NCBI GenBank assembly: GCA_000320545.1
Contig: ADNK01002208.1
Span: 129,725-193,724 of the forward strand
Direction of reading: 5' to 3'
Length of the DNA stretch: 64,000 nucleotides
From: Bigelowiella natans CCMP2755
Lineage: Eukaryota; Protista; Cercozoa
Below, one piece after another: positions 2,582 to 58,390 of the stretch (the first letter of the stretch is position 1; each line of letters begins with the position of its first letter). Under the pieces are notes generated by a model. It was not told the DNA's origin. It ran no database searches and saw only the letters and a list, made by a program, of their open reading frames with translations. A program made the translations under genes and the position numbers.

Positions 2582-3522
2582 TACAAGCAACCAATTTGTG
2601 GGAGAATAATCCAAGAAGTACAGCTAGCCGCGAGACGCAAGAATCCTATGTAGCAAGCATTTTGATGTGGAACTTGCATGGAGTATGTTGTGAAATGAGT
2701 CATCGTGTACGTCGACGGCTGGATTTGTTCTTGCAACCAATTCCGTTGCTACATCATCAATTGCAACCGTGCAATCGATGTAGCGATGCGCCGCATGGCT
2801 AGATGGCCTCGTCATCATCGGCTAGCTAAAAAAAAATGTGCGATGCATGCATGCTTGTGCTTGGATTCGTCTGACCATTCACGCGGTGCATCACAACTTG
2901 CTCAAACGCGCGCATTTTCACAAAAAATGAGTTTTCTCGACAACCAGCATGTGGACTTGCAAGTCCCTACACGTGTGTGTGCTGTCTGTGACTTGTGCAT
3001 CGACTACTTCACATGCACCTTTGACCTCACATATGTAGCACACATATGAACAGGCACGCGCACTTGGAGTGAAACGCGTCTACAAATCCCTAGATCGCAT
3101 CGTTGCATTGTGTGTGCTGTTCACACACACACACACACACTAGCACAGGAATGTATTCTGCATGTGCCCATGATGGATCGAGCTGCTTTGCTGCTGAACA
3201 TCTTTTGAAGCATCACATGCTTTGATCGCACGTACGTGGTGACCGGAGTGATCGATGCGTGGCTCGAAAAAAATGATCTCAATGCTGTTACCACATGTTG
3301 TGAAAATAGGTGTCATCTCTACACGTACATGCACGAACACGTGAATACTCTCCTAACGCACTGCCTTCTAGATCAGTGCTGCTGACTACTGTGTTTGAGC
3401 TCTCTCCACACTAGTCTATGACATTTGTGGGTGCATGAAACCGAAATCGTTCCTGTTGACCACACACATACACAAACACAAACACATACACACACGCACA
3501 CACACACACACATTTTCTTACT

Positions 3523-4388
3523 TTAACTGAGAGAAAAGGAGTTCGTCATCATGTATGTGCTGCAAAACATGACAAAGCGACCTTCATGTATTTCTTCGAC
3601 CAATTCTTTCTCTTGAAGTACCTACAATGATCATTTCCAACCCAAAGCACACAAAATAAGGAAAACTGAAAGACAAGGCGAATTTAGCTACAGGAAGAAG
3701 GACGCATTATAGTATTCTGCCAACCCTTTGGTGTTCCTCGATGTTCCAAATGCAGAAAATCTCGGGACCTGAGAAGAATTTGCTACATCATACATACATA
3801 CATACATACATCATCAGAACGGAAAATGATGTGAGTGCGTAGATACCCCCGAGCGATAAGTAGGACTTTTCTTCTCGCTTTCCTTCACCTCCAATGTCGT
3901 GCCTGGGCATTGTACGTATGTTGAGCAGGGATGCATACTTTCACAGATGAACTTGCACTTTAAAGTCAGAAAAGGGGGAATACAATCAAATGGATCGAGT
4001 AACCATATATTCGGTATTTTCCAGGTCCTAGATTGGGGTGCTGACAACAAACAACACAACACGCAACATTAACAATACACTATTTGCCACATCTCACCAA
4101 AATTGTCATCAAACAAAAGTTATTCGAAACGGTACTTATCATCATCATTATGATTATGATGGTTATTTGTTATTACGTATGTCTCCGGAACTTCTCCTCC
4201 AATATTTGAAAACTTTTCTCCAGTAAACCTGCAGCAGTAGTAGCAGCAGCAGCAGTAGCAGCAGCAGAGAGGTTGTTACTAATGAAAACTATTTCCACAT
4301 AAATTCTCCTGCAATATGATCGTCCACCTTGTACCGGAGAAACTAGCAGAATACTTTTCGGGAGAGCGGAGGACTGTATGATGTTACA

Positions 4389-4435
<47 letters not shown>

Positions 4436-4555
4436 TTACAACGGTACATTGTTTTGAGTCTCCTCCTCCTCCTCCTCCTCCTCCTCCTCCTCATATATGT
4501 TCAAATATATCACACTATCTGATTGAACAACCGCCAAACCCTAGACTCTACAACA

Positions 4556-4587
<32 letters not shown>

Positions 4588-4660
4588 CTTTTTCAGCTAA
4601 CGATACTGTCTTGAACTTTGCTGCGGCAGGAGACGAAGATACCGTAGGCTGCAATGTTCA
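3523..4660 (-). CDS. Probable spliced gene of unknown product; frame and boundaries uncertain
   Basis: Several minus-strand AG/GT-bounded open blocks between microsatellite-rich introns (e.g. YASLLNIRTMPRHDIGGEGKREEKSYLSLG); no recognisable motif. Confidence 0.3.
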
Positions 4661-6829
4661 CGGGATAATGATGACGATGATCATGATTATGGTGCCACAA
4701 CAAAATATTCGCAAGCTCATTCTATGGAAATACTAGTGATTGCAGTTATAACGTTGTAACGCTACTGCGTATTCTATTCTCACACGTGCCACCTTTCCAG
4801 TGTGTGAGAGAGGAGCACTTGCCCTACAAAAACAATATCATCCTTTACGTATTCGACTAACATTGATCCTGAAATCAATCTACAATGCTAAGACATCTTC
4901 ATATTGTTATTTGCGCCCTTACAATGAAGTGGGATCTGAACTTCGCAACCAATCCGAACGCTTGTGTTTCGCTAATATGGAAACCGTAAACATGTGTATA
5001 TTATCATTGAAAGGAAGAAGACATAATCGTCGATAAAGCTGCATAAGAAAATCGAGTGCGATGAGTCAATGTACACTGTTAATACTCCCATTTGCTCTTA
5101 ACATGCAATTATCGTCAAGAGGTCAATATAATCACGTATTTTGTGATAATAAGGCTGAGCATATATTACCATGTATTCGATTTAGGCATTCCCTCCTTTG
5201 AATCACACAATAAAAACATGCAGCCGACTTAAAGAAGAACGGGATTCTACATTCCAAAGAATATCAACAAAAAGAGATAGTAGTGCGATGATCTAACTCA
5301 CTTGCTTTTCGTAATCATTGTACGTTTGTCCACGATATTGTATGGATCAACTCCCTTTCTGTAATCATTTTACATCATCAATCAAAGATAGAAGGAAACC
5401 CCTTTCGTCAGAGACTTTGTATAGATTTAATGTAATATGTTATTTCTTATTACTTGAAGCAAGAAGAAGTATCGTTGTAGAATAGTTTGGGATTGTTTCT
5501 TGATTTCCACCTAGGGTGACGAGATATTATAGACCACGACGATATCTTGAATAATGATCTCCTTAAGAATGAATATGGTAAATTAAATGCAACCTTTCTA
5601 AGTTGTATTTATTCCCAGCCCGATGATAAGAAAGAGGAGAAAGTGTCACTCTCTTTGATAGACTACATTTTCCTGATAGACACCATATGTATTCATATAT
5701 GTCACTCTGGGCAGAATTCTCAAGGTCACTATAGCCAATAATTTATGAGATATAAACTCTGTTGTTGCATCAACAACAACAACCATCACCTAAAGTTGTG
5801 TCCAAATTGTATACAGGGTCTGTGTCTTCCCAATCGTCGAATCCACCAAGATTTAGTCCAGGCTTTTGAAAAAAAAATCTTACTTTCTTGTGTGTCGTGA
5901 AATTGACTATAACGTTGACAGCAATGATGAACATTTACTTTAAAGTGGATCAAGTTCGCAATTTAAATGGACTGGGACATCAACAGACACATTTACACAT
6001 TTTTATTTGTAAGAGATTTTATGAGAACAAATTTTCACCTTCGATACACTGTGTGGATTCTTCGAAATTGCTGTTTTTATACCATAAACAAGGGATACAT
6101 CCTCCGTCAGCGAACATTCGCACAGTCAACTAGCCATCAGAGTCGACCTTTTTGTCTAGATTTACTTTCCCTTTTCGATTTTTTCACTGCTGTGTCCATT
6201 TTGGTGTGAATCTGCGAATCACTTTAGTATTGGGCTCAATTATGAACAGACGAGGGGGGGGAGAAGAGCGTGTCAGGGCAGGCTACACATAGGTCGACAA
6301 TTCCCTGCACACGTTTTCTGTCAACTGCTAGACGTTTTCTGATAGAAAATGTTGTCGCACATTGTAGATTACAAGGGATTATGAGGAAACTCAAAAGAAG
6401 GACAGAACTGGGAGAACAGGGAAAAGAACAACAAAGAACGCAAAGAAGTTTCATGAATACCGAGTATCTCGAGAGATTTTGCAGAGAGACGTCATCGCAT
6501 TTCGCACTTATTCGATAAGAACTATCATGAATGTCCAAGTCTTGTCTTAAACATGGCTTCGGGGAATTTATTTATCGTACTTGAATGTTTGGTGTCGCTC
6601 TTTACAAAAAAATGCACAAGTGTTTGTCGCATGTGATCTTTTACAAACGTAGAATCATTGTACAGGCCTGTAGCACAACTCTCAGTTCAAAATCAGATTC
6701 AAATAGTTGTTTTCGGATACATGCGAGAGTTAAAATTAGGTCTTAAACTTTCCGGCAAACCCGAGAAGCGCTTCTCTCCGTTCTCCTCCGTGGGCTCCGT
6801 GAGAGAAGGAACACAGGCGTCGTGCCATC

Positions 6830-8686: not shown

Positions 8687-8726
<40 letters not shown>

Positions 8727-10776: not shown

Positions 10777-11760
10777 CACATACGTCGGCACAATGCATCA
10801 TTTTACATTATTAGAAAATGATGACATTTGAAAAAATAACAGTAATCACAATTAAATTGAAATTACATGAGCAAATAAATGGAATGACAAAATATCGACA
10901 CATTCTAGCAGACGTTGATAAATTTGCGACACATCTAGACATCGTTTAAAAACTTGATCGTCAAAACATCCAATTTTGCAACATGCAGCGCCCTGTGTGT
11001 CGCATCGGCAGTGCTAGAGTGCCTAGCCTAACAACAACGGCTTGCGAGATGAACAACAAAGCTATGCGCTGTGTGCAACGTGACGAGTGCATCTGTGCAT
11101 CACTAGATCACATCATCATGCACTGCATTCATTGTCATCATCTGTGGATCGGCATCATTGGTTGCTCAGCACATCCCAATGCCATGTCTGAAGAAGGCGT
11201 ATCTGTGACTTCGAAGGCTAGCTTGTTCTGCTGCGTTGCATGTGTTGTCTTCATTTCTTTGACTGATCGATCACCTTTCTAGCTAGCTAGCTTTGCTAGC
11301 TTTGGTCAGGTCAGTCAAGACATGCACATGCTAGCATGTCTAGATCTCTGAGACAGGCTAGCAGGTCTAGAGGTGCAATGAAGTGATTGAATCTTTTCAA
11401 TGGTCATCCCAATGCAGCCATTCATTTGCTAGTTTGGCCATGCAAAGCAGCGGCTGCAACGCCAATGTTGCGTCCATTTGTTTCAGCAATGATGTGCTTC
11501 ATGCATTCAACAAAAGCAACCATGCTGCAGCATGCCTAGCCAATTGTGCCTAGCTAGCCAGGTCTGCGAATCCACAGATCTGGACTTCATGCACCTCCAC
11601 TGCTCTGGCTGGTCGGGCGTCGGATCTCCTTCCGAGCACATTTTTTGGACCATGTTCTCAATCTAATCCGTTACGAAAAATCTTTCCATTGTCAGGAAAC
11701 AATGAAACAATGAAACAATGATGATGAAGAACTACATTTCCAAAGTGTTGCAAGACACTA

Positions 11761-12146
11761 GGGTGCGATCCACATCCCATAAATCGACGAAATGTGGTAC
11801 AATAAAATTTCGCAACCGAAAATATTTTTTTCTTAAAAAGTCGCGTACCAGAAATCGTGTCCATGGGTTTCAAGGTCAACTTCGATTTGTGGGACCAGCG
11901 AGGAGACAAAACATGGTACGTTTTTTTAGGTAATAACGATGCATGTAGGGCATTAGCAGTAGAAATTGTTGGTTGTGTTGTGCGCGACGGGAAGTTGCAA
12001 GGCTAATTTGAATTTACCTGACCTCGACAAAATGAGGGATGTGGTTCGTCATCAAATTATTTTTCCTAAAAAGTACGAGAATTTTTAATGTTGACGTTTT
12101 ATGGGATGACGTGATTTCGCCGATTTATGGGATGTGGATCGCACCC
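11761..12146. mobile_element. MITE (non-autonomous DNA transposon, PIF/Harbinger-like GGG termini)
   Basis: 33 bp terminal inverted repeats GGGTGCGATCCACATCCCATAAATCGRCGAAAT at 11761-11793 and 12114-12146 (1 mismatch); subterminal gggatg copies; no coding capacity; TSD not clean (cta vs ctc). Confidence 0.75.
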
Positions 12147-12454
12147 CTCAGGTCAAGTCCTTGACCACATTCTACTTTTAAACCAGACTAGCCGTTTAGG
12201 AAATTTGTTCCAAAAAAAACTTTTTAAAAAGTTTGTGGAGGATGTACGAGTACACATATTTTTGTCGAAGCTCCCGTGTATTTTGTGGAGTTTTCACCTA
12301 ACATCATGGCGTATTTAGCATCCAGCTGCTGTTGTGTTGATATGGAGCGCTGCATCTCGAAAGGCAAGAAACTGTTCTCCACAGCCCTATCTACGCAAGC
12401 ATGCCAGGTGTCACGCAAGTTAAGCCAGCTACCGTTCGGCACGACCAGAAGGAG

Positions 12455-13910: not shown

Positions 13911-14947
13911 AGCAACCCCCAAATGATGTTGCGGGTGGCCACTTGCAGCGTGGTGTGCGTTCATGTGCAACCGGCACCACGTGTGTCATGCATTCACTTC
14001 CGTTCATCATGTGAACATTGCAATGTCCAGTGATCCTACACGTCTTGATGTGTACTCACGTCTGTGGTTTACACGAAATTATACATGGCTCATTGCATCA
14101 TGTGTGCGTGGGTGGGGTATGCATCTAGTAATCAACGTCGATCGACAACCCGAGTCACAATTCGCATGCACGCATGACGAGCAGGATTGGATGCGATAGC
14201 TAGGATTTCACATGCTGGCATGCTTTCAGAAATGAGTTCATTGCAGCGCAATCTTGGAGATCATGCTGCATGGGTGAATATAGCTGGCTAGCTGGAGCTT
14301 GCTAGCTTGCATGCATGGGGGCATGAAAATTCAGAGGCTAGGCCAACATTCGCTTGCACTCTTCGATCGACCATGTGCATCGCATCGCCGTTGAGGAGCG
14401 ACTGCAGCTGCGCATGGCTGCTAGACTGCTCTAGCTAGCTAGTGCTGGCTAGACAATCATTGTGACAGCTAGCTGGCGGTCTAGCGGTGGCACACGTGTT
14501 GCATGTTGCATGCCGGCTAAATGGGGGCAACAACGCAACGGAGCTGCGCTGACACTGCTGCGAACACATGGCCGATCTCCAACGTAGTGGCCCATGCCAG
14601 CGCGCATGGTCATTCAGGTTCATGATGCACGACCTCGATCAGCGAGCGCGAGGTGCGTTTCCAACGTGCAAATGATTGTGCAAGTGTAATGGCTAGCTGG
14701 TGCGGCGTGGGCGGGAAGGACAATCGTTTTCATCCGCAGCAGCACCATGCGTGCTCTTGCAGCAAGCTGTGCATGAGCCTGGCTAGCTGGAATTGAGTGC
14801 AGCACCACAAACCAGTGAAGTGCAACTGCATCACAATGATGCCAGCTAGCCAGAATGGTGGATGAACCAAGTGATCGATCTCGATTGCCAAGAGGTGGCA
14901 CGCCAGCACGGTGCAGCTCATCATTGCTACTAGCTAGATCATGCATT

Positions 14948-14986
<39 letters not shown>

Positions 14987-15392
14987 CAATGAACAAACGA
15001 AGTGGTGGAGTCATCAGGATCGATCACGGAACACGTTGTTGGCTGTGAATGAATGGATCAATGAATGAAGCATTCCAGTGCTTGATTCGAAAGGACCATC
15101 ACACGTGCATTGGCGCTGTAGCCGCTGCATTGCACAGCTACACGAGGATGACCATTGAACAAATTCAATTCAATTCTTCACATCAGTCTCGCTACGACCA
15201 CGTTCGTGTGAGAGGATAATAATTTGGGTTTTGAGGGAGATTTATTTATCTGCGACAAGTGTTATGGTATTTTTGGAGCACTAAATGGCCAGCATTTATG
15301 CCATTGTTTACCGCTCCTCCTGCTGCTGCTGTTTAACCCCTCCCCCCAAACCACCTTGGTTGTAGTTCTGGGCTCTGCATTGCCGATTCGCC

Positions 15393-24482: not shown

Positions 24483-25241
24483 CATGCGGCCCCAGACCAA
24501 TTTTTTGTTCATTTTTGTGTGCGCATCTGCCAAGTGCGTCATATTATTGCAAATAAACACGTCTGGAAACATTAACAACACTTCATCATTGGACACTGTG
24601 ATCTAGGTGATGTGACTTAAATGGTGATTGATCAACGCGAGGTAAAATATGCATGATGTATCTAGACACAAATGGCTAGATGGTAATGTGTGGGGCTACT
24701 ACGCAGCGTGCATGCAAGCAAACTTCATTGTTATCGATCAGCCAATTTATTCTAGCTAAAGCTTGCATGCTAGATTTGGCGAAGACAAATTATATGTTCA
24801 CAGAGCTCATATGTAGTGCGTATATATTTGGTTAGATTCGATCACCAGCTAGAAAGATAGCCTACGTACGCACGGTGTACACGTGTAAATCTACCCATGT
24901 GCATACGCTACTGCTGGCGGTGGTACGTATGGCCGGCACGCTGCTGGACTTTCACATGTGGTGGTAGACTGCGGTGCACGCTAGACGCGATGGTCGTACT
25001 TTTATTTCCAGATAGCACCGTAGAATATATAAGATATGCATTCTGCTCGATCCGTCTGTGCTATTATAACGTAACTCAATCGTGACGATATGTCCATGGA
25101 TGTGGCAAAAGTAGTCTTAAGCTGGCTATAGGTGATGATCCTCCTATTCAAAGTATGCGTACTACAACACTGAATAGTGCGATGCAGATTATGCAGTCAG
25201 TAGTCTCCTGTAGTTATTTGTGATGAGCACAACTACTCCCA

Positions 25242-25312
25242 ACTAGCTCCTCCGATTCTCCGCTTTGCAAAAATATGCTGTTGTTTTACGCGAAGATTCT
25301 TCATCCGCTAGT
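25242..25312 (-). promoter_or_regulatory. SECIS element in the GPx 3' UTR
   Basis: Minus strand ACUAGC-gg-AUGAA-GAAUCUUCGC-gu-AAA...GCAuauuuuUGC..-GCGGAGAAUC-GGAG-ga-GCUAGU: helix I ACUAGC/GCUAGU, UGA/GA core, 10 bp helix II (1 mismatch), apical AAA and mini-stem; ~230 nt downstream of the GPx stop. Confidence 0.85.
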
Positions 25313-25541
25313 CCCTCTGGGATTGGCTTATTACTGTGCCCAGTACCAATGTACGTACTTATTATTACAAACTACTACTCTGCATTAACAGATAGTAGTG
25401 AACGATACTCTTCATTTGCCGATAAGAGCAGCAGCAGCACCAGCACCAGCAGCCAAGGGACTACTGCTACTACTACTACTACTACTACTACTACTGTTGC
25501 TTATTCATGTAGCATCGACAGAATCAGCTGTCGGTCTTGGT

Positions 25542-27552
25542 TTATAACAGTGCTTCGATGTCCTACGATGGTATACCAATAATATGAAGACACAGAGAGA
25601 GAGGGAGAGAGAAAGAGGGAGTGGGGTTAGGGGGGGGGGAGACATCAACCAACGGAAGAGAATGAGAATGAGAATAAGAAAGAGGAAATTACATGATGTG
25701 CAAGTATGTCATTGAATTCTCTTATGTTCAACCTTCTTGATATCGATCGTTGGATATCGTCTGCTGTACCGTTTGACAGGCAAGCCATCTTTGTTGATGA
25801 GGAATTTTTCAAAGTTCCACGAGATGTCTGAATAATGATCATAATAAATAAATAGAATCATGATTGCTTTGAAACTTGCTCGATTTCATTCGATCTCTCT
25901 CTCCCTCCATCTCTTTCTATTACTATTAAAATGTGTATAAATGATCTCCAGTCATCATTTTACCGTTACGCTTGACTGGTGACCAAATGATAAATTGTGG
26001 ATTTCCAATTAGCTGCTCCCCATCATCACCTCTTTATCATCATCAATGCACATCCAATCAATCAGTCTCGTATCAAGTGCAATTCAAAATCCACAATCAT
26101 TTCTGAATAGAAGAAAAGAGTATTATTTCCTTCATTGTTGGTATTGGCCGCTGAGAAGAAAAGTTTCTCTGTTTTCATGGTATTGCCGTGAAAAATATTG
26201 TTTCTTCTTCTTCTTCATCATCATCTTCTTCTTCTTTTAATATCGGTATTTTGGTTTATGTTGGTAGTAGTACTCTGGTACAGGAAGGACTGATTTCAAG
26301 TACGTGAAGAGTGGTAGCTCCTAATAATATGATCGATCATTTGGTTCTTCAACAATGGTGATGCTTTGCTATTTCTTCCTCTCAGAGACAAATCGAACTG
26401 TAGACTGAGTTTTCAGTAATACTTTAATTTCGAATGCACAAATTGTAGTTTTTAGTGATGTTATAATTGTTGGTGTTTTGTTCCAACGTATTATTGGCTT
26501 ATTATTATTATCACATTTGCTCCATTCACGTCAGCGCGAGAGAAGATGGGAAACTTTGGCTCATACCCATTCCCAGGGCGAATCTTACAAGTATAAGCAA
26601 CCACAACACCCACCAACACGACGACGATGACAAGACGGCGACAAGACGAAGCAGCCACCAATTACTTTGTTTGTTGTGCAAATTCGCCATCATCGTTCGT
26701 GTTGTGTTAGCTGCTGCTTCTTGAAATGATGATATTACATGCTTGAGCTGTGAGAGAATCTCCTTGCCTTTATTATTGGTTTGATGGCCAAATTGGTTAG
26801 AGGGAAAACCAAGGCACATAAAACCTTTTGAGGCAAACTCTTCCGTGAGCGAGTTCATTCCTTCGAAATCGCTCACGGTCGTACCTCATAAAGTTGCAAC
26901 GTTCTCGATCAAGAGAACTTTCCCCTTATATTGAGACAAAGCTGTAGTATTATGCATAAATCGTTAGCGATGAAATGAAAGAGTGAATACTCGTGACCAT
27001 TTATTGTTACAAATGTGTTCTTAAAATATCTGTGAGGTAAACCCCTCCTCATTTTTAAAAAATATTACGGTGAATTGTTCCATCGAGAAGTTCAGCAGAA
27101 AACTCATACACAGACGATGCACTGGTTGGATCAGTTCCAGCGTTGACAAACACGAGAGAACGGCGAGCATTTCCATTGATGGACGACATCGTTGGACGAA
27201 GAAGCGGCTGCTTGTACGGCATCTTGCTCCGACCATTAGAGGCAACTCCTCTCACTATGGGCATACGTGCCACCTACATGTGAGGATGATACAACTGTAA
27301 GGGAAAATCGATCAAATAAAGACTTAGAGAAATTTTACTGAGCGGGCCATCATCGATGGAGCTTTTAAGGTTGCGAGCCGTGAGCGTGACGACGACCTCG
27401 ATGATTATGAGAATAATCAGCGGGTGGAGCATGATAGATGTCATTCATGTGATATGATGAGGGCAATATCACCATAAGACAGTAAGGAAAGCTGCCATTC
27501 CAAGCAGCAGGAGGTGCGGCGATCGGAAACCGCGAGAGGTGGTTCCTCCCAT
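25542..27552 (-). CDS. GPX: Selenocysteine glutathione peroxidase (GPx1-like) with N-terminal signal + transit peptide
   Basis: Spliced: ...[31 protein letters not shown](26886-26888)-[88 protein letters not shown]; ATG 27552. Confidence 0.93.
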
Positions 27553-28663: not shown

Positions 28664-29379
28664 GCGCGTACATATGCGTCTGGGAATAGACGGCAAACTG
28701 TTTTTATCTAGCATGCATGCACATGTGGGCTGCGTTTGAATGTATGCACAAATTGATTAACGCATAGCGCAACGCGTGCGATACCCAATGGATATAGACA
28801 TGTACGCAAATTCGGTTCACGTAAAGACGTCATTGTACAGCCATGCTAGCATGCCAGCACATCGCGTCATTGTTGTTGTTGAATGCTATATTGATTAGCC
28901 CCATTTGTCACATAGAGAGTTCGGTAGCGCGATATACGCCTAGACGTGTACGCATTTAGCAGCATGAAAGCACTATGCCTGTGCAGTATATAAGCGTGCA
29001 TGCGTCTAGCTGGCGCTGCCAATAACGGAAAACACTAGGCCATACTATTAACAGTATAGCACGGTGTATGTGTGCACCACTAGACCACGTGTGCATTAAA
29101 TGCAGAGGCTACTTGTTGCCGAGATGATGTTCAGCGAACAGTTTTGGATTTCTAGGCTTACTGTGATGCAACACGCCACACAAAACATCGCTAGGCATGT
29201 GCATGCAAATGCATTTGGGTGATCATCAATGCACAGCATGCATGTGCGCCGCGCATCGCGGGCAGTAAATGAAGAAGCTATCCAAAGGTTAGTTTGTGTA
29301 GTTGTATTAAAGCGCGAAATAAAGTTTGCGCATGATTGATACATCAGCTCTGTGCAAGGTGTGCACGCGCTAGGTGTTA

Positions 29380-31690
29380 TTGCAACGTTTAAAGAACTGT
29401 TTTCTTCTTCCTCCACGCTCATCTGGCCACTGATTCAATACATAATGCTAAAGTCGTAATACTCACACCAAAATCTTCTATATTGTGGGCGAGTGTACGA
29501 GAAATTTGCTACGGGAACGCTGACTATTGAAATTCATTTTCCCGTCGTCTATTACTTGATCTTTTCCTCGGATTTTATGCTCTTCATTTCGGAACTGGTT
29601 GGCAGCAAGCTTTCTCTGCAGGTAATCTATTTGGGAGTCCTTCTTGCTATTTTCGTCGGACAAATAACATATCTAGATAAACATAAAAAGCATTAATAAT
29701 GTCAAAAATTTCCTAGCAAAGAAATTGAAGTGAATGGTATTGAGCGACATTAAACGCGCACAATAACTCGTATGAAAAAAAAAACTCTCTCTCCCTCTTT
29801 CTCTCGTTATATGACCACCTCATCAAAAAGGGCGTTCCGAGTAATTAATGGGATACATGTGTCTTTCAGCTGCTTCAGCGATAGTAATGACTCCGCGCTT
29901 ATTTTCATTGGCCTGTCGTCCATTACGCACAAAGTGCCTAGACCAACACCCTGCATGTACGATTGTATCAGGAAAAATAAAGTAGAAGTTTAACCGCAAT
30001 AATGATTTGTTGATGGCGAAACTCTTTCTTCCATCACCTGAACAAACAACGGAATTCCAGCGTAGAATCGCAACTTCAAACCATCAGTCACCAATGGATT
30101 ATCGGAAAATCGAGCATCTTTTTCGAGGTTTTCTATAACATATGCCTATTTAATACCCAAACAGAATGGATTATCGTTAAGATATGACTTAATTCTCCGT
30201 CAATCTTGCAATTCTTGAAATGTACGACCTGTGTTGGAGATTGAATGGCATGAGAACACATTGAAATTGAGCGGTCAAATGAGGAGCGCAGCCCGATTTG
30301 ACTCTTGAGCACACAATGCTCCTCCTATATTACCAATTGGATAATATTAAAGGGATGCTGAAGTGTTAATCTTAACACGAACAAATCGCCCAAAAACAAA
30401 TATGAAAGGATCTAAAAATGGGTGGTTGTGAGAGTGGCAACTAGGGATATGTTAATCATCATCTCACTAATATTGTATCTCACCGTGACCAAAGTGAGCG
30501 CTGCATATGACGTCCGGCACATCCTCTTCGCCAATTTCAAGATGTTTTGCAACACATCATTTTCGAGAGGTGTTGTTTCAAGAAGATTCAGTAAACATAT
30601 TAGTCTGATACGATACTCTTCGCTTTCAGGTTTGGCAGCAGGGCGCCAATTGGGCCTTGCTTTTGGCTCGGGGGATGGTAATAGGAGTTTGTCGTTGTAT
30701 TTCATCATATCCTTCGATGGGCGGACTTTTGGTAATTCCTGCCACTCACCATCAATCTGATGTGGAGATATGCACGATGCGTGTTTAATAATTATGATAT
30801 ATCATCACTAACATTCACCATCCAGAGGTAGGGATATAGCAGTTGTTCATTTGTATTGTTTTCAGCAGGAAAGTGACTGTGAATGCTTGCCGCCGTCGTT
30901 GACTTCCAATGATGGAAAAATCGGAGGAGTGGAAACAATACATCGGTCGCAGCGTGTATCGGCAGAATTCTTTTCATTGCACAAGTGTTTGCTGCTCGGT
31001 ATTACCTGGCATAGCTTTCCCTCTCCCTCAAGTCCATTGAACGCCTTTAACGCCTCCATTTCCACAAGCAAAGTCTTGAAAATAGCGAACAATAGATATG
31101 GAAGTCGGATATGTGGTCGGATGCCAACAAGTAATAATAAAAAACAGTCTGATCATTTCGCATTCAAGTAATAGCTACAATTTCCTATATTGCGCATCAT
31201 CATCCTCCTTTTAATGTTCATGAAAGACGACGACTCTTCTCCTTCACCTGTCTCTCATGTGATATAATTTCCCCATCCATTTCCTCCTTCGATGAAAACA
31301 GCATTTAACCAAAAGTTTTCAGATATGCACCAAGACAACGTTAGAAATAGTATTTGTCCGTCAACATCTCCATTCACGTGGACGCGAAGAGACGTATTAG
31401 TAATGACGATACTAATAGTAACAATAATCACAATGGTTATGACACGTTTTCCATATGTTGAAAAATCCCCAAATATAATACAGTCGAAACCTGCTGATCC
31501 TCATCCTTACGAATAGCACTACAAAATCGGAAATAGTAATAAGTTAGATTTAAAGGCATAGCGACGTGAGCAGGATAGGATTTTCTACCTTTTTCCCTCT
31601 TCCTTTTCCTTTCTCCTAGATTTTTCTAATGCCTCTGTTGCGCATCTATCTACTGCATGCCTGGAGAGTCTAGAAATTGCCGTCCCAACC
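29380..31690 (-). CDS. GAF-domain protein, multi-exon; both ends approximate
   Basis: Exons: PAAKPESEEYRIRLICLLNLLET..LAKRMCRTSYAALTLV / KSQIGL..DRSISMCSHAI / VIENLEKDARFSDNPLVTDGLKLRFYAGIPL / GLGTLCVMDDRP = canonical GAF; Cys-rich segment upstream. Confidence 0.8.
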
Positions 31691-32312: not shown

Positions 32313-34511
32313 ATGTCTTCTGACACCCCCACGACCCTTGCCAGCAGCAACACCTTCAAAGCAATATGCGGCAACGACCTTCCCTGTCTGAAGCGTTTAA
32401 TTGGGGAAAACGCAGATGTTGAGGAACGAGGCCCTCTCGGTGGGTAGCAGCTGCAGCATCAACATTGTCGCGTCAGTAGTTGGAGTGTTGAGTGATTGAT
32501 AGCACATGTAGTGTTGGATGTTAGGTCAAACATGAAGCAAAATATTTGCAGTAGAAATAGAAGTAGAAAGTAGCATTGACAATAGGTTTGGTGACACTGA
32601 TGGTAGCAGAAGTAGTGAGAGAGAGCGCCATTTCCATGGATGTGAGTTGTGATTTGTCTTGGGAAACAAACGTCTGGCGGTTGTAATTTTATGTTTTAAA
32701 GACATTTGTTGAGGATGCACCGTCATCATTTGGAAAAATGACACTCAAAATTGCAAAAATGTAAAGATATGGTCGATTTGCCATTAGGTGATACTCTGTT
32801 AATCGCGGGTTCAAGGGAGGGTCATTTTGAGATCGTAAAACACCTGGTCAACATGAAGGCAAACATTGAGGCGGAAAACGAAGAAGGTGGGTGCCAATGC
32901 TAGCATTGAAGGAGCAGTTGTAAAAATGTTACATAATTTTAAATGACTACATAACGATACATTAGGTGATACTCCGTTAATCGTGGGTTCCACTCGGGGT
33001 CATTTGGAGATCGTAAAGTACCTGGTTGACATGAAGGCAAACATTGAGGCGAAAGGCAGATATGGTGGGTGCCAATGCTAGCATTGAGGCAGCAGTTGTA
33101 AAAGATGTCACATAATTTAAATGACTACATCACGACACATTAGGTAGTGATACTCCCTTGATCGCGGGTTCCAGAAAGGGCAAATTGGAGATCGTAAAGT
33201 ACCTGGTTAACATGAAGGCAAACATTGAGGGGAAAGACCGTGGCGGTGGGTACTAATGCTAGTATTGAGGCAGCAGTTGTAGAAGATAATACACGATTTG
33301 AACTGAATACATCACCACACATTAGGTAATACTCCCTTGATAATGGGTTCCAGAAAGGGTAATTATGAGATCGTAAAGTACCTGGTTGACATTAAGGCAA
33401 ACATTGAGGCGAAAGGCAGATATGGTGGGTACCAATGCTGGCATTGGGGCAGCAGTTGTAGAAGATGTTACATCATTTCAAATGACCATATCGCCACAAA
33501 TTAGGTTATACTCCCTTGATGATGGGTATGAAAAACGGTAAATTTGAGATCGTAAAGTACCTGGTTTGACATGAAGGCAAACATTGAGGCGAACGACTGT
33601 TCCGGTGGGTACTAATGCTAGCATTGAGGCAGCAGTTGTAGAAGATGATACACGATTTGAAATGATAATATCACGATGCATTAGGTGAAACTCCCTTGAT
33701 CGTGTGTTCCAGAGAGGGTAATTTTGAGATCGTAAAGTACCTGGTTGACATGAAGGCAAACATTGAGGCGAACGACTGTTCCGGTGGGTACTAATGCTAG
33801 CATTGAGGCAGCAGTTGTAGAAGATGATACACGATTTGAAATGATAATATCACGATGCATTAGGTGAAACTCCCTTGATCGTGTGTTCCAGAGAGGGTAA
33901 TTTTGAGATCGTAAAGTACCTGGTCGACATGAGGGCAAACATTGAGGTGAAAGACCGTCGCGGTGGGTACTAATGCTAGCATTGAGGCAGCAGTTGTAGA
34001 AGATAATACACGATTTGAACTGAATACATCACCACACATTAGGCAATACTCCCTTGATAATGGGTTCCAGAGAGGGTAATTTTGAGATCGCAAAGTACCT
34101 GGTTGACATGAAGGCAAACATTGAGGCGAAAGACCGTCGCGGTGGGTACTAATGCTAGCATTGAGGCAGCAGTTGTAAAAGATAATACACGATTTCAAGT
34201 GACTATGTCACCACACATTAGGCAACACTCCCTTGATAATGGGTTCCAGAGAGGGCAATTTTGAGATCGTAAAGCACCTGGTTGACATGAAGGCAAATGT
34301 TGAGGCCAATGACAGAAATGGGTACACGTCCTATGACTTGGCGAACCATGACGAACTCAAAGTGTTCATCAAGCAAAGATGCATTGAGCGACGGGTTCAG
34401 GTGTTCAAAAGAGACTTCAGGGATTTGCACATGTTGAGCACGGAATTGAAGCGAGGGTTGGGGGCGGCAGTAGTCGCCATGACCACGAAAAAACAGGTGC
34501 ACAAGAGTTGA
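32313..34511 (+). CDS. Ankyrin-repeat protein, one repeat per exon (10 exons); exon 6 carries a +1 frameshift
   Basis: Exons 32313-32439, 32788-32886, 32966-33064, 33144-33245, 33326-33424, 33505-33604, 33685-33783, 33864-33962, 34043-34141, 34222-34511. Each internal exon encodes G-x-TPL-xxx-S-xx-G-xx-EIVKYLVDMKANIEA-xxxx; all introns phase 1 (GTGGGT...TTAG). Confidence 0.9.
32788..34320 (+). repeat. Tandem array of ~179 bp units (99 bp ankyrin exon + ~80 bp intron), about 8.5 copies
   Basis: Recurring gagatcgtaaagtacctggttgacatgaaggcaaacattgagg and intron gtgggtactaatgctagcattgaggcagcagttgta at 178-182 bp spacing. Confidence 0.95.
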
Positions 34512-37200
34512 TGTGCACCACCTGCACAGTGGGCGATGTCGGAAGCTTCGTGTTGTCCCGTGGTCAATGTGAAGAATCATGTGGAACGTGCAACACATGT
34601 GATGTCGTGAAAGACATGGACCATCTCCTCCAGCAGTGGCAGCTGCAGGCATGCAGCACGTGATGGTGGACAGACAGATGCCAGAGATTCAGGCATGCCG
34701 TGCCATCTGGCAAGCAGACTGTCCGGCTGTCCGGCATGTGCACATGAATGCTGATTTCAAATGCACGATGATGGACACAGCAATGCATCGCATGCATCAC
34801 ACGTGCATTCAACATGCATGCACGCAGACTGCATGCATGCGAGCTGCCGCTGCGTTTCACAGCCACATCAGAATGCATGCTGGCATGACCATTGAAACAA
34901 AAGATTTGATCAATTCGTTGCATCCGTCTCACATGTGCATGGGCGGAGAGCGCTGTGTGCGGTTGTCGCACACACAAGCAACGTGACGTGCTGTGCACGT
35001 GCAACGCGCGACAGTTGCATGCTCGTGCATCGGATGTCACGTGCAGTTTGGCTTTGTCCCTTGCCAGCTTGCTGGCAAGCTGGCAAGAGCACACGCGATG
35101 CACGCAGTGCAATGAATGGACGTGGAGACAGGGATCATTCTGGCATTCCACCAGCAGAGATCTGAGGGTGCGTGCAAAAATTGGAGACTCAGAGTGCAAG
35201 CTGGAGCAAACAAAATCAAAGCAAAGTTGCAGAAAATTGTCATTCGCGCGAGCTTGTGTCGCGCTGCGCGGTGTTGCACCATCACTGTCACTTTTGGTGG
35301 GAGGCGTTGGCATGCCAGCATGCGAGTGTTCATTGGAAAAACTTTTTGGCGGTCGTGTGGTGGTTCACTTGCAGTGCTTCAGTGATGTGCGCTGCAGAAT
35401 GCGTGCGCAGGACTGTGCTGATGCAACCAAGTGACAACACGCAGTTGTGCTTCCGTTTGAGTTCTGATGATTGTTTTCAACTTGCGCAACGTGCACGGGT
35501 TCCGGCGGTGTCGAGAACATTCTCGATCACTCTGGAAGGTTCTCGAAGGTTCTCGAACCTTCTCAGAACTTCGCAGAAGTTCGCAGAACTCGTGCGCACT
35601 GGGTTCCGGCGCTGCGGATTCGGGAAGATCATCGAATCTTCTCGAAGCTTCTCGAGCATTCTGGAAGGTTCTCGAAGACTCTCGAACCTTCTCAGAAGTT
35701 CGCCACGTGCAACAGTGCAAACGCAGGCGGCCTTTGCGCATGCGTCTGCCCTTCATCGTGGGTGGTGCAACCACACCGCTGACAAAACTTTTGGCGGCTC
35801 TGCAGCCACAGGCATGGCACAGTGATGCAGCGCGTCGTTGAAACTGTTCGCATGCAAAACGGCCGCAGCCGGGCCCTCGTCCTTGATCTCGTGGTCAAGG
35901 CAGGCTGCGTGCTTCTGAGCCGGGTGGCACTTGTAGAAGTGCAAGCTTGTTGGGGCGATGTGTCTGGGCTGTGCAGCCACTTCTTGAGGTGTTCCTGCTG
36001 GTGTCGTGCTTGTCGGTTGTTTGTCTTTGTTGTTTTCGTGTGTTGGTCTGCTGTTGTTGTCAACTTTTGTCATCGTTGGTCTCTCGGTCTTTCTTGGTTT
36101 TTTGTCTTTGTTTGGTTTTCTGTGGTTTTGGGTTTTTTGTGGTTTGGGGTTTTGGTTTTTTCTTGGTTGCTCGAAGTCTTTTGTCAATTGGGACTTCGAG
36201 TTTTTTTTCGCTCGAGGCCTCGAAGTGTCGTGTGCGGGAGGCAAAGTGACGAGAGCAGACTGGGAGCGCACAAAGGGAACTGGTGCGCAGAACTCAACTC
36301 CAGAGCTCACCCTGGGCACTGGTTGCCAGTCGAAAGAAAGTTCTGGAACTTTCTGCCCTGGGGTGCTGCTCGGAAAGAAGCGCACTCGTTGTGCACGTGC
36401 GCTCCGGTGCATGCGACTTGTGTTGCCGTTGCGCCTTGGCTTGCGCTTCTCGATGCTCCTTCGCTTTCGCTGTTGTTGTTGCTGCATCGCTGCCGCGCTC
36501 CGTCGCTGCACGACAATCGAGACATTGCTGCCACGTGCTGCGTGTTGAGAAAAAGGTTGACATGCATGCACATCGTTGCTGCGTGCTGCGATGGTGGCAT
36601 GGCGCCTGCCAGGAGCTGCGCCACACTTGGGGTGCAAACGTTGGCGATGCAATGGACACGTGACGACATCACATGGATGTGCATCACGTGTCCAGCAGCC
36701 AGATGCATCGATCATTGCTGTGCATGCTGCTTGTCATCAGGGTGCAAGCTCACGTGCGTGCGCACGTGCAACACCCATCAGTGCATTTGCACCCTTGGAA
36801 TGATCCCTGCATGCATGCATGGAGATCGAGTTGCTGATTCATGCAGCAGGATCGAATGATGCAAACGTTGAAACAGCCATGCACACATAGCGCTGATTGC
36901 CGCAATGGAATGCGTGCCTGCATGCACGTGTTGTGACATGGGATTGATTGATGCATCAATCAATTGAGCACTCACGTCACGCATGTATGCGACGACGTGT
37001 CATCAATGCAAGTGAACTAGCCAGCGCACCCCAAAACGAGAGGCTGCACCACTAGCTGTGACACTGCTGATCTGCTGATGGATGCATGCATGACGTTTGC
37101 ATTGATTGCTTCCATGTGACTCATTTCTCGCCGGACAGGGATGAATGAAACGAGAAATTCACGAGATGCTCATTTGTTTCACAGGCAATAGCATGGCAGC
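34480..37200. other. TpA-depleted intergenic island (strongest of eight), possibly containing a decayed repeat element
   Basis: By-eye scan finds a single TA (35934) between 34473 and 36887; rich in TGCA, CATG, CACA, TGTG. Confidence 0.85.
35515..35703. repeat. Duplicated array of alternating nGAAn/nTTCn pentamers (heat-shock-element-like)
   Basis: tctggaaggttctcgaaggttctcgaaccttctcagaacttcgc (~35531) and tctggaaggttctcgaagactctcgaaccttctcagaagttcgc (~35660). Confidence 0.6.
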
Positions 37201-44963: not shown

Positions 44964-45026
<63 letters not shown>

Positions 45027-45794: not shown

Positions 45795-46393
45795 AATGAC
45801 TCGAGCATGTGCGGTATATGGTGGCACAATGTACATCGTTATCAAACAAAGCATCATGAAACTTACAAAAGACCGTCACAATGAATGCCATGCATGCTTT
45901 ACATTGCATAGCTGTGTTAATTAAAATCACATTTGTAGATTTGCTCCGTAGTGCTGCATGCAATTTGCAACATTTACACATCAGCAAGTAACATGCGTAC
46001 GATACAGTGATGTTGATGCGCATGTGACGGGTTTTACAACGGCATATCTAGAAATGCATGAGCACTTGCTAATACACTGGTAAACTATATTATAAAATGC
46101 TTGTTATTCGCCATGACCGAACGTAACACATTTAATAAAGGCTTTGCTAGCGCAGTTCGAGCAACGTATATGTAAATGTTCCCTGCTTCTGTATTGCATC
46201 GTAGCGCGTATTCAGTGTCGCAATGACGAATGGAAACATTTAGGACATCACTAGTCTTTATTGAAATTCTAGACTTGAATCCATTGCATAAGCAACAGGC
46301 AGAACTTTGCGATTATGTATATCGTTAATAAACACCAGAATTCTGCTTTGTGGCATAAGAAATATCCTATCCACGAACTACAACTGAGATGTA

Positions 46394-46712
46394 TTACCCA
46401 AGATACCAATTCAACATGATTTTGCAGGCATTAAAGTTCAAGAGGCAGGCAAAGAAGTAAAAAATAAGTATTACTCCGACGGGATAAAAGAAACGATTCT
46501 GATCTCTTAAGAAAGGGAGCACACTATACCTGCAATGATGCAAATCAAAATGAATCCTAGTTTCAATATCGAAGATGTAGATTACCCGAGAACCGTGACG
46601 TAATGGTAGTAGATAAATGCAAAAGCATAGAGAGAATTGGCGAGCACTGTTGCAACAAAATCCGACTGACAATAGTTAATAAGAGTGAGGGAGGGAGAGA
46701 GAGGGGGGGGGG

Positions 46713-46763
<51 letters not shown>

Positions 46764-50604: not shown

Positions 50605-50644
<40 letters not shown>

Positions 50645-53031: not shown

Positions 53032-53068
<37 letters not shown>

Positions 53069-55021: not shown

Positions 55022-55055
<34 letters not shown>

Positions 55056-56577
55056 CTTCTTTTTCATGCATCTGTATTGAAGAAGGGAGGGGGAGAAGGA
55101 TTATGATATGAGTCATTGTTGATATGTTTTAGTTGGAACGCGCCGTACGAAGTGATGAAGAGGCATTTCAAGCCATCAAACAAGCAGTCTCTCAGGTGGT
55201 ACTAACAAAATCAGGGGGAGGAGGAGGAGTAAAGCTTCGTTACTTTTCACCTATGAAACGGTTATATAACATACGTTTATTGATGATATTTGTGTGATAG
55301 GTTCCCAAATCAGGAGAAGTGTGGTGTGAGGCGGCAAGAGCCTACTTAAATCCATTGTCAAAGAACTTTTCTCTCACATCAGCAAAGGTAGTGGTAATTA
55401 GTAGGAGAGGGAATCAATGCTAGTTGCATATGTTGGACGATTAGTGACTTTACCCATCTTTTAAAAGCATTTCCCATGATCATCTTCTGACATCTAGGTC
55501 ACTTGCTCTCCCTCCCTATGTGTATTATTTCTTTTAACAGCGATGTTTAGAGTTCGCAGTACGTTTCACGCCTCAGTATGGAGACTCTTTTGTGGAGAAG
55601 TAATGACTTACCACTAAACATATTATATCGATATAGTAATTAGTACTAAGTGCAATTTCGAATTGTCCTTATTTCTTTCAATCATCATCATCATCCTATA
55701 GGTTGCGACTAGAGAGGTTAATCTCTGGAAATTCTCCACGAAGTTCTGAAGCGCTGTGTCTACCAGTGGTATTATATAACGATGATGATGTTTTGATAAG
55801 TATAAATAGCATTGATCAGAATACCAGTCAATACGCATTAGTTACGTCGTCTAACCAATAAACAGCTTGTTGCTACATACTACTCTTATTTTGTGGAAAT
55901 ACATATATATATATATATATATATATATTATGAAAAAGGCTGATCTTAAGGATGAAAAGCATTCACAAAGCATCACCATGGAAGAAAGATACATTAAGAG
56001 AATCAACGAATGCATTAATGCGGATCCAAACTATGGTAGTAATCATAACATATAAGGGGGATGTAACAATATGAGGCTGAGTTCAACAATCAACCTAAAT
56101 ATTGCATATGCTTGTTATTTAAGGTGCTCTCTGGCTATTGTGCAAGGAAACACCCTATGATACAGTGTCTGAAGTAATAGGCAGAGAGAACATAGGCACA
56201 GGAAGAGGAAGAAAATAGATGATTTCCTGCAAATTAACCTATAGAATCTGTTGTTTATTGTTTAGCACAATTGTTCTTATCGTTGTGTTCTTATTCTGCA
56301 ATCGAAAGGTTATGATCAGAGCTATGGGAAAGGTAGACGAGGAATTGAAGAAACACAGTGCCCTATATCAGGTGCTAGTACTTGCAGTGAGAAGTAGTAG
56401 AAAGTGTTGACAGCATTTCATAAGTTTCCAGTAATCTCCACCAGAAAAATATCAATATCTGTATTATTTTGATGTAACATATGTTGTTTGCGTGTCGCTT
56501 AGCGCGCCCTGATGAGGAATATGACAAGAGGTGGAGAAGGACGAAATCAATTCAACATCGATGGGTAAGTTCAAAAA

Positions 56578-56622
<45 letters not shown>

Positions 56623-56982
56623 CTAATGGTAGCCCTATAATCTTAAATGAGCTGATTATAATGATTCCATTGGTGTTGTTGTTGTGTTGTTGCTTCTTCG
56701 TGCAATTAGAACGATTCCTGAGGATCTGGTGCAGAAATGGCGGCAGGACAACATTAACAGCCTTGAAAATATGTAATAATAATTGTAGTAGTAATAATGA
56801 TACCGAAAGTTTAACGACACCACCAGCTTTTCTATATAAAGGCAGATCGAAAAGGACTTATCGTACGTTATTATACATAGTACTGATTCTTCTTCCCACC
56901 AACGATTAGGTATCCTTCGCTGCTTTCCTTGGAAAAACAGCAACGTTTCCAGACTGTGTTTGGATCTGATGTCGCAATGTGA
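48449..56982 (+). CDS. HAT/TPR-repeat (PRP6-like) protein with long low-complexity His/Gln/Ser-rich N-terminus
   Basis: Exons: QGWLESARLEEECG, EGALMEARKG..ARFIFKYLM, WYGPIYVEASRFEE, GLKRVPRHGPLWFAALRL, RWKVWRAGARLE, HPGTGRLWALHIQ, VPKSGEVWCEAAR, FTPQYGDSFVE, CINADPNYG; stop TGA 56980-56982. Confidence 0.75.
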
Positions 56983-58390
56983 TAAATATAGTATCTCAAT
57001 AGGCATTGCACTTTTATAGTAGCTCATTCCGACAGATTTTCCAATAATTCACTGCACCTGTTGATAATCACAATGATGCGTTTGTGACGACACGATGTGT
57101 AACCAAAAAAAATAATCGATTCGTTCATGCGGCTGGACTAGCTTCTTCTTATTCAAAGAGTAGTACACTAGACATAGATATTTTGCTCTTACAAAGCCTA
57201 TACAACAGCACGTTATCAACGTATATCCTACGCTTGAATGAATCGAAAAGAAGGCAAAAATTCATTCTATAAATAAACAGCACTGCTCTTCGTTTTAAAT
57301 AGCAGCATAAGCAATAATGTACTACTGGTCTTTTCATGTAACTGCGTAAGCTGGTAAGTGTGCAATGCTCAGGAACAACGCATACAGATCTCTAGATCTT
57401 ATACAGCACGCACGTCATACATGCGGCACATAGATGTGCACAATATAAAATGCAGTAAACATCTAGACATTTGACACCGCAGCATTAATAATACGTCAGA
57501 CGACACGAATGTTATGTTGCCCGCGTGTAGTAGGACTGCGCATCAGCTAGGTATACAACTTATTATGCTTATAAAACATGCTAGCATGGTACTATCCTGT
57601 CTAGCTAGACAGCTAGCTATCTAGCTATATAGCTTGGATAGCTCGCTCGAATGCTAGCTAGCATGATGCTAGCATGCTAGTTTTTATTTAATGAGGTGTA
57701 ACGCGTCTAGCACAGATAGACAGACGACGCATGCTAGCATGCTAGTCTAGTAGTAGTGTAGCTAGCTAGATAGGCATTTTCCATTCTTACCTTGCTGCAT
57801 GCCTCCAAAATTGCTTGCTTTGCTGCAGTCCTGCTAGCCAGCTAGAGCGAGTCGTTCAAATGCTAGATATCGATTGCCGCACGTTAGCTGGAACGTAGTA
57901 GCACATCTAGGCATCTCTAGACCTTCACAGACTCTGCACGCTCGCATGTTCATGCCGCCAGCAGACTGTGTGCTGCGTACTGGTGTTGGACGGGCTGCAA
58001 TGCGAAAAGATCACATTCTCAATTGTGCGTCATCTCAATCTGAGCAATGTAGCTGTGCAATGTAATGCCATAGAATGCGGCGGCTGCAGCTGGACAGCAG
58101 CTGTCCAACTGTGCAATTGTTCCGCCAGTAGTGCCATGCATTGTCATCATTCTAGTGTTGTGCATGCGCGTCGTGACGAGCTAGCTAGCGGGAGAATGCT
58201 AACGCCGCGTTTGCACCTATGAAACATGTGATGGCTAGCAGATGTTGTTCATTGAAACAAACACTCATTTAGCGCTGTGAATTTGCTAGACAGCCGCAAT
58301 ATACAACCCAAACAGTAGATGACTCTAAAAGGACGCTGCACAATAAGCAACTAAAATAATGTACACATACATATCAACATGTGTACATGC

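Follow-up and report, generated by a model that had tools for sequence, protein, structure and literature searches.

In our study of a 64,000-nucleotide stretch of the Bigelowiella natans CCMP2755 genome (hereafter the window), the spacers downstream of genes were found to have in common a CTAG scar, the 3' stumps of LINE elements and an alternation of purines and pyrimidines, and part of them have also undergone a directional loss of TpA. We regard it as likely that these are layers: promoter-free 3' spacers gather scars, LINE stumps and other repeats, and a patchy TpA mutator sweeps over them. The DNA past transcript 3' ends is probably the promoter-free, untranscribed space of a gene-dense genome. 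Judged from its mutational signature, the process that erodes the spacers is the mutator published for viral inserts of this species by Mettrop et al. (bioRxiv 10.64898/2026.01.13.699255), and what our study adds to theirs is the mutator's reach into host 3' spacers.

Composition of the 3' spacers

A preliminary description of this DNA had reported eight compositional islands downstream of stop codons. The window composition reproduces all eight at approximately the same coordinates, with sizes of 0.5-2.7 kb, and our gene models, together with Pfam matches for three flanking genes (GPx and UNC-50 on the - strand, SAM on the + strand), agree in placing six of them between the members of convergent pairs and the other two between tandem neighbours. 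The islands and the features associated with them are the following, with TpA given as observed/expected ratio (o/e).

2690..3480: island I1, between convergent genes; TpA lost in part (o/e 0.49), with two perfect CTAG scars (2795, 3136)
10870..11660: island I2, between tandem genes; TpA eroded (o/e 0.45), with 18 of its 25 TA within CTAG; eight perfect scars at 10931-11436
11695..11759, + strand: 65-bp interspersed repeat of high copy number, bordering I2; best copies at 89-95% among 40 scored candidates
13920..15210: island I3, between tandem genes; TpA eroded (o/e 0.45); six perfect and two decayed scars (14211, 14899)
15110..15191, + strand: LINE 3' stump in I3; part of its TA sites are now CA
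24490..25000: island I4, convergent spacer, TpA not eroded (o/e 1.03); scar at 24672
28680..29380: island I5, convergent spacer, TpA not eroded (o/e 1.02); two scars (28842, 29076)
32313..34511, + strand: ankyrin-repeat gene upstream of I6, of a multi-copy family whose paralogues served as polarity outgroups
34472..36888: core of island I6, fully eroded block (o/e 0.04); decayed CTGG/CCAG scars at 34876, 35060, 35076, 35136 and 35311, no intact scar
34841..34933, + strand: eroded 3' stump in I6 of the same LINE as in I3, identified by eye against aligned copies; TA sites are CA or TG, with a decayed scar inside
35784..36625: fragment in I6 from a dispersed repeat family, with at least five other copies at 77-86%, all without TA; no Pfam match in the flanking reading frames
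45800..46260: island I7, convergent spacer, TpA not eroded (o/e 0.93); perfect scars absent, alternation 0.63
57330..58300: island I8, convergent spacer, TpA o/e 1.14, with 28 CTAG; six perfect and two decayed scars

As drawn in the preliminary description, I6 begins about 30 bases within the last exon of the ankyrin gene. The Pex16 protein of this contig shares 55% identity with Lotharella proteins and 100% with JGI transcripts.

The islands are genuine and confined to 3' spacers: introns and divergent spacers lack the pattern, as had been noted, both in the window and in a 254-kb sample (0.3% of the genome of 91.4 Mb and 3736 contigs) in which genes were predicted from sequence only by our own self-trained finder. 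CATG, TGCA and CTAG are indeed enriched in them, 4-5-fold relative to the remaining window sequence, and across the eight islands CpA/TpG reaches an o/e of 1.4-1.9 and GpC 1.3-2.0, with CpC/GpG at about 0.5. Decay of CpG was rejected as the source of TG and CA, the island CpG o/e (0.6-1.16) being mostly not below that found elsewhere. The scarcity of TA ascribed to all islands was found in I1, I2, I3 and I6, but not in I4, I5, I7 and I8, whose values lie at or above those of the divergent controls (0.47-0.88); TpA loss is thus not the common trait of the islands. Nor are the islands devoid of shared sequence, as had been supposed: I6 includes a dispersed-repeat piece and a LINE stump, another stump of this LINE lies in I3, I2 carries the 65-bp repeat, and each of the window's 25 perfect CTAG scars falls inside an island.

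Purines and pyrimidines alternate more strongly in every convergent spacer examined (0.54-0.69) than in divergent spacers (0.48) or introns (0.51). Recognisable scars make up less than 3% of spacer bases, and they were rejected as the cause of the whole composition, since the removal of 65 of them brought no change: the alternation persists, and 12-bp palindromes are still 2-3 times as frequent as in Markov controls.

The CTAG scar and the LINE stumps

The scar is an 8-bp insertion in which CTAG has on either side one copy of a 4-bp target, itself favouring C/A-N-N-G/T. The preliminary description had overlooked these 4-bp direct repeats. Identical 4-mers flank 28% of the island CTAG, with no signal for 3-mers or 5-mers. 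Genome-wide, where scars number tens of thousands, CATG-CTAG-CATG occurs 3828 times against 7 in a reversed control, and ACAT flanks CTAG in direct orientation 1733 times against 114 inverted; with direct flanks exceeding inverted ones 15:1, a hairpin or mirror signal at CTAG was rejected. In the 254-kb sample, 3' spacers hold 83 scars (42 in 27 kb of convergent and 41 in 29 kb of tandem spacer) and divergent spacers 0 in 14 kb, while introns hold 4 in 71 kb and coding sequence 2 in 110 kb. That the scar arrives by insertion is shown by one ankyrin paralogue (L009), which carries a scar where the other paralogues have the empty site, and by a scar lying within a LINE stump.

The scar has the direct target duplication of fixed length around a constant core that a transposon excision footprint would show. 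In excision footprints of the Tc1/mariner and piggyBac types, a few constant, self-complementary bases are set between the copies of a duplicated target site, with a preference for palindromic targets, and the scar resembles such DNA-transposon footprints in all these respects. It differs from the known ones in combining a variable 4-bp target with a constant CTAG, in its tens of thousands of copies, and in its donor: in about 290 kb, no complete element was found that ends in CTAG within a 4-bp target duplication and brings a transposase. An inverted repeat at 11761-12146 was rejected as donor, as its apparent CTAG end is where it adjoins the 65-bp repeat, and a second copy was not found. A scar of ACA type, an idea taken from the de novo indels of Mettrop et al., was likewise rejected, because duplication-ACA-duplication is not in excess (ACA 1.14-fold). 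A metagenome scan for the double scar gave 103 matches, none with a diverse scar field, and our literature search found no published description of the CTAG scar.

The stumps were assigned to the 3' end of a LINE because their 5' end is variable, their 3' end is fixed, and their sequence lies downstream of a reverse transcriptase (RT) reading frame of up to 1179 aa in the source element. A 22-mer of the stump, with 763 matches genome-wide, follows RT matches downstream at a distance of about 1.2 kb, on the same strand, in six contigs. All seven local stumps are located in 3' spacers.

Direction and patchiness of TpA erosion

The preliminary description had proposed a TpA-specific process turning TA into CA or TG, and this is borne out by paralogues, LINE stumps and decayed scars. 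Polarising substitutions, a check that it had named and that we ran with paralogues, gave the same direction: the CTAG of three of them (L007, L008 and L011) reads CTGG in the window and in L009. Among decayed scars genome-wide, CTGG/CCAG cores number 1013 (508 and 505) against 127 for TTAG/CTAA, with a background of 54 for unrelated cores. The erosion is therefore directional and affects both strands, and it runs opposite to the baseline mutation bias (GC>AT 2.65). In I6, 2414 bases retain a single TA, against an expectation of 126.

The same changes have been recorded as they occur. In mutation-accumulation lines of B. natans, Mettrop et al. (bioRxiv 10.64898/2026.01.13.699255) found that nearly all of the 231 mutations arising in two viral regions were TpA>CpA/TpG; they also reported 124 TpA-poor clusters genome-wide and named ADAT2 as their candidate enzyme. 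Species, dinucleotide, action on both strands, and block-wise, intermittent occurrence are alike in their system and ours. They link the mutator to viral and other foreign sequence, whereas here it has reached 3' spacers of the host and the last part of one of its multi-copy genes; CTAG and termination are absent from their main text, which draws no link to gene 3' ends.

Erosion is block-wise, not constitutive. In host non-coding DNA it is limited to 3' spacers, as had been claimed: 10 of 32 are eroded against 0 of 29 other stretches (Fisher p=0.0009), a comparison in which the greater length of the 3' spacers biases them towards a low minimum window. Two thirds of the 3' spacers are uneroded, so the earlier view, in which erosion is present at each 3' end and produces the islands, fails. 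Neither could erosion be the maker of the islands, because CTAG arrives by insertion and alternation is impossible from transitions. TA has been lost in 8 of 100 near-perfect LINE stumps, among the matches listed, and the decayed share of scars in the 254-kb sample is greater in eroded (14/63) than in uneroded spacers (5/39), a difference short of significance (p=0.30). Repeats are present in the eroded I2, I3 and I6, but in uneroded spacers too. In I6 the erosion spans host spacer and exon. The adjoining 179-bp tandem ankyrin repeats (85-90% identity) retain TA, and a gradient along them was rejected, the nearest unit retaining 6 of 11 sites and the farthest 5. I1 is eroded and carries no recognised repeat, so an attraction of the mutator to mobile DNA is a tentative proposal.

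Alternative explanations

It had been proposed that a TpA-specific modification (an hmU/J-like thymine or a modified adenine) covers all termination zones, erodes TA and thereby creates the islands. In its favour, eroded non-coding blocks lie only in 3' spacers, one transcript stops about 300 nt past its stop codon at the start of its island, TA accounts for a somewhat smaller share of YpR steps in convergent spacers (0.22, CTAG excluded) than it does in introns (0.31) and divergent spacers (0.26), and base J and dinoflagellate 5-hmU sit at gene-array boundaries (PMC11071213). The comparison of TpA with introns, which the preliminary description had itself offered as a refuting test, came out against it (o/e in the 254-kb sample: convergent 0.87, introns 0.88, divergent 0.76). 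Four of the eight islands have a ratio of about 1 or more, and neither the CTAG excess nor the alternation can result from transitions. By appearance, this is not a chemical stop mark at each gene end, because only about a third of spacers are eroded. A constitutive mark is further disfavoured by the mutation-accumulation lines, where 3132 generations should have yielded about 10,000 events (our own arithmetic, with 10% of the callable genome mutating at the viral-region rate) and at most 9 TpA events were seen outside viral regions, 7 of these annotated in viral sequence or on its scaffold (bioRxiv 10.64898/2026.01.13.699255). These lines exclude a hypermutation that acts today on all termination zones. 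Our data give no sign of hmU or base J. A profile search for Tet_JBP (PF12851) gave no match, a weak test given short exons and a control that gave none either. We consider this explanation quite improbable.

Alternatively, a single state of silent chromatin at 3' spacers, which termination rather than any resident element would set, might attract a scar-making cut, such as a topoisomerase II-type 4-nt break joined with a CTAG linker, and sometimes license the TpA mutator. Trapped Top2 gives rise in yeast to 4-bp duplications through NHEJ, from a 4-nt staggered break as in the scar; the available part of that report notes no constant inserted core (10.1101/2020.05.03.075358), and a fixed palindromic core is the typical residue of transposon ends. 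The lack of a donor in about 290 kb, and of scars in divergent spacers and introns expected to tolerate some, would suit such a cut, as would the 17 of 21 mutation-accumulation indels that are intergenic, mostly insertions (Mettrop et al.); CTAG occurs in none of the 21, and the co-located LINE stumps fit a simple tolerance or targeting of mobile DNA. On balance this seems unlikely. Selection for alternating, palindrome-rich DNA as a structural terminator or insulator would account for the raised alternation of all convergent spacers examined, its survival of scar removal and the palindrome excess. Paralogous spacers, however, vary freely through small insertions and erosion, the islands range in size from 0.5 to 2.7 kb and they have no conserved motif, which makes such selection very improbable.

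Proposed origin of the spacers

In the layered account that we favour, the scar would be the footprint of a cut-and-paste transposon or a transposase-like nuclease making a 4-nt staggered cut. Truncated at their 5' ends, LINE stumps settle with other repeats in the same 3' spacers, and the mutator has swept these block-wise, I6 fully and I1-I3 partly, sparing I4, I5, I7 and I8. This mutator may be a silencing-linked adenine-editing defence, episodic and attracted to spacers bearing mobile DNA; CTAG might persist as a poorer target, through later re-insertion, or both. Our best guess for the alternation, with its GpC and CpA/TpG excess, is that it comes from many small alternation-rich insertions. 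A broader possibility, which we hold to be doubtful, is that 3' spacers constitute a mutational compartment of their own, in a silent state, possibly with a DNA mark, that is handled like foreign DNA: it would attract a nuclease, of the host or domesticated, and an end-joining pathway, which together would write CTAG scars and tiny inserts rich in alternation with no donor element involved, and the TpA editor would be licensed episodically.

Relation to known systems and significance

Base J and 5-hmU resemble this case in their tie to sites of transcription end or convergence and to repeats (PMC11071213, PMC4150806); they are measured modifications at array boundaries, while the present trace is known from sequence alone and in a third of spacers. 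Fungal RIP is also a dinucleotide-specific, block-wise, defence-like hypermutation, in the opposite direction (CpA>TpA there, TpA>CpA/TpG here). Pairing of repeats is not the trigger in B. natans, because the ankyrin tandem repeats keep TA and the main target of Mettrop et al. is single-copy.

Blocks free of TA lack TAA and TAG stops and therefore give rise to false genes; our own gene finder placed exons within I6. Such genes may inflate the unannotated gene counts in the TpA-poor clusters of Mettrop et al., and caution is advised to annotators. The scar points to a transposase or repair pathway, and its tens of thousands of identical copies, whose decay can be counted by pattern search, provide an internal clock for the editing. 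With these results, a newly reported DNA-editing defence is widened from viral inserts to the 3' spacers of the host.

Composition and position of the islands

Dinucleotide counts confirm that the eight islands reported in the preliminary description exist: in all of them CpA/TpG o/e is 1.4-1.9, GpC 1.3-2.0 and CpC/GpG about 0.5, while CATG, TGCA and CTAG are 4-5 times as frequent as in the remainder of the window. Six of the eight are placed between convergent genes and two between tandem genes. The TpA depletion ascribed to the islands holds for I1, I2, I3 and I6 and not for I4, I5, I7 and I8, whose values (0.93-1.14) are near 1; the divergent spacers named in the same description have values of 0.47-0.88. 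The extreme case is I6, with 1 TA observed against 126 expected in 2414 bases.

Islands and associated features of the window
2690-3480, I1, TpA o/e 0.49
10870-11660, I2, TpA o/e 0.45; a 65-bp high-copy repeat, distinct from the LINE stump, at its end
13920-15210, I3, TpA o/e 0.45; an 80-bp repeat at its end
24490-25000, I4, TpA o/e 1.03
25242-26888, glutathione peroxidase gene (Pfam match)
28680-29380, I5, TpA o/e 1.02
34480-37200, I6, TpA o/e 0.04; the 80-bp repeat again, eroded
35784-36625, dispersed repeat in I6, at least 5 copies elsewhere, all TA-free
45800-46260, I7, TpA o/e 0.93
57330-58300, I8, TpA o/e 1.14

The window forms the final 64 kb of contig C1529; a Pex16 gene elsewhere on this contig shares 55% identity with Lotharella proteins, which places the source among the chlorarachniophytes. 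Spacer classes were surveyed over 254 kb (the whole of contig C1529 and 60 kb of a second contig, C2540) with gene models from our own finder, which was self-trained on the same DNA and placed false exons in I6. Convergent spacers gave a TpA o/e of 0.87, introns 0.88, divergent spacers 0.76 and the initial kb of tandem spacers 0.79; because convergent spacers are level with introns, the claim that 3' spacers as a class are TpA-poor fails by the comparison that the preliminary description itself proposed. A milder form of the deficit survives in convergent spacers, where the TA share of YpR steps, CTAG excluded, is 0.22; the corresponding shares are 0.31 for introns and 0.26 for divergent spacers. 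On C2540 (L028-L031, about 205-238 kb) the finder also predicts a single minus-strand gene encoding about 8,500 aa.

A CTAG scar in 3' spacers

Identical 4-mers flank 25 of the 90 island CTAG, with no equivalent signal for 3-mer or 5-mer flanks, and the window's 25 perfect scars (CTAG between two copies of a 4-bp target) fall without exception within islands. Across the genome CATG-CTAG-CATG is found 3828 times and its reversed control 7 times, and ACAT flanks CTAG in direct orientation 1733 times and inverted 114 times; the target preference is C/A-N-N-G/T. Of the scars in the 254 kb, 42 fall in convergent spacers (27 kb) and 41 in tandem spacers (29 kb); introns (71 kb) have 4, CDS (110 kb) 2 and divergent spacers (14 kb) none. 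Scaled to the whole genome, this corresponds to about 30,000 scars. Since one scar is present in paralogue L009 and absent at the same place in the other paralogues, the scar is an insertion. A 4-bp duplication around a constant palindrome would be the expected leftover of a cut-and-paste element or of a nuclease with a 4-nt stagger; no donor was found in the sequence examined, and a literature search found no published description of the scar. A Pex16 transcript from another chlorarachniophyte (59% at the amino acid level) carries two CTAG within the final 70 bases of its 3' end (L035:1230-1302), which is not enough to call the class shared.

Mobile element debris

It had been proposed that the islands have no common sequence and are not one repeat family; the latter stands, and the former does not, as they contain repeats and a LINE stump is present in both I3 and I6. 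This stump is the 80-bp repeat, with 763 genome matches, whose position about 1.2 kb downstream of reverse transcriptase (RT) matches, on the same strand on six contigs, identifies it as a LINE 3' end. Every one of the seven local copies is in a 3' spacer.

Several other elements were observed. One retroelement family (RT frame up to 1659 aa) has at least about 100 copies on many contigs with identical scores, which makes it young, and is apparently free of TpA erosion; a second RT family (1179 aa) is the source of the LINE stumps. A MITE-like pair of 33-bp inverted repeats (97%; 11761-11793 and 12114-12146), enclosing about 385 bp, lies directly upstream of a SAM-domain gene, with no second copy of the unit among the scored candidates. 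On C2540, a TpA-eroded unit of about 4 kb (L026:6584 to L027:656, about 186.6-190.7 kb) has long degenerate inverted ends and predicted ORFs. A further unit, of about 540 bp (L010:1307-1852) with 42-bp inverted ends (93%), lies inside a TA-free block.

Direction and patchiness of TpA erosion

The TpA-eroding process itself has been published: of the 231 changes that mutation-accumulation lines acquired in two viral inserts, nearly all are TpA>CpA/TpG. Their rate is about 1000-fold above the base rate, only some of the lines show them, and the same study mapped 124 TpA-poor clusters, which it interpreted as foreign DNA (bioRxiv 10.64898/2026.01.13.699255). The text of that preprint makes no link to gene 3' ends or CTAG. 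It lists 9 TpA changes outside the two viral regions, and the annotation places 7 of these within viral sequence or on a scaffold that also carries it; by our arithmetic, the viral-region rate over 10% of the callable genome would yield about 10,000, and present-day activity is thus bounded.

The proposed TA>CA/TG direction is borne out. Scar cores read CTGG/CCAG in 1013 cases, against 127 for the C>T alternatives TTAG/CTAA and 54 for an unrelated core with identical letter content, so that TA-loss cores dominate despite an opposite baseline bias, GC>AT by 2.65 (bioRxiv 10.64898/2026.01.13.699255). Five scars in I6 are decayed and none is intact; CTAG in paralogues L007, L008 and L011 is CTGG in the window and L009; and the TA sites of LINE stumps are kept in five spacers, partly lost in I3 and all lost in I6. 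Fresh scars have been inserted in eroded blocks (L009), and TAG is the context of 20 of 211 events in our raw count, not composition-normalised, from the preprint's tables; CTAG survival possibly reflects a poorer target, re-insertion or both. Outside TA, T>C also exceeds C>T (21 vs 12 per 1000 in I6 repeat copies, ankyrin 3' paralogues and LINE stumps) and peaks where A precedes T, a context shared by four non-TA changes in the preprint's mutation list, which makes ApT a possible secondary target.

Erosion is patchy across 3' spacers. Of 32 3' spacers, which are longer on average, 10 contain a 400-bp stretch whose non-CTAG TpA o/e is below 0.3, as against none of 29 controls, which are divergent spacers or long introns (p=0.0009); TA is lost in 8 of the 100 near-perfect LINE stumps listed. 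The suggested loss downstream of every gene is therefore upheld as to place, non-coding erosion in this sample being found only in 3' spacers, and not as to generality. The ankyrin gene upstream of I6 contains 179-bp exon-plus-intron units (32745-34377); its family has at least 20 loci, some eroded into introns.

Purine/pyrimidine alternation

Alternation reaches 0.58-0.59 in convergent spacers, compared with 0.51-0.52 for introns and 0.48-0.49 for divergent spacers. Transitions are excluded as its source because they leave purine/pyrimidine order unaltered, and so are scars, whose units reach only 0.53; after removal of 65 of them the composition persists (CpA/TpG 1.48, GpC 1.53, CpC/GpG 0.59). 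Small alternating insertions are a lead, with slippage or calling artefacts possible. Paralogous spacers differ by many insertions of 4-12 bases, and of the preprint's 21 de novo indels 17 lie in intergenic DNA and most are insertions (bioRxiv 10.64898/2026.01.13.699255, Table S1/S2). From these tables we computed that 39 of 46 steps in the ten indels >1 base alternate, 16 being CA/TG; ACA stands at the end of many insertions and is also created by several events in which a substitution adjoins an indel. This pattern, on which no discussion was noted in the accessible part of the preprint, may be the mark of a repair process or an artefact of calling; an ACA scar is not enriched in spacers.

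Origin of the islands

A base modification at every termination zone, as first proposed, is improbable: two thirds of 3' spacers show no erosion, and the search for a TET/JBP gene, a weak test, gave no match. Somewhat less unlikely, but still doubtful, is a silent state set by termination that attracts scar-making and TpA erosion without resident elements. We consider it probable instead that this compact genome has its silent, tolerant space in the 3' spacers, in which scars and LINE stumps would accumulate and which the known TpA mutator would hit episodically.
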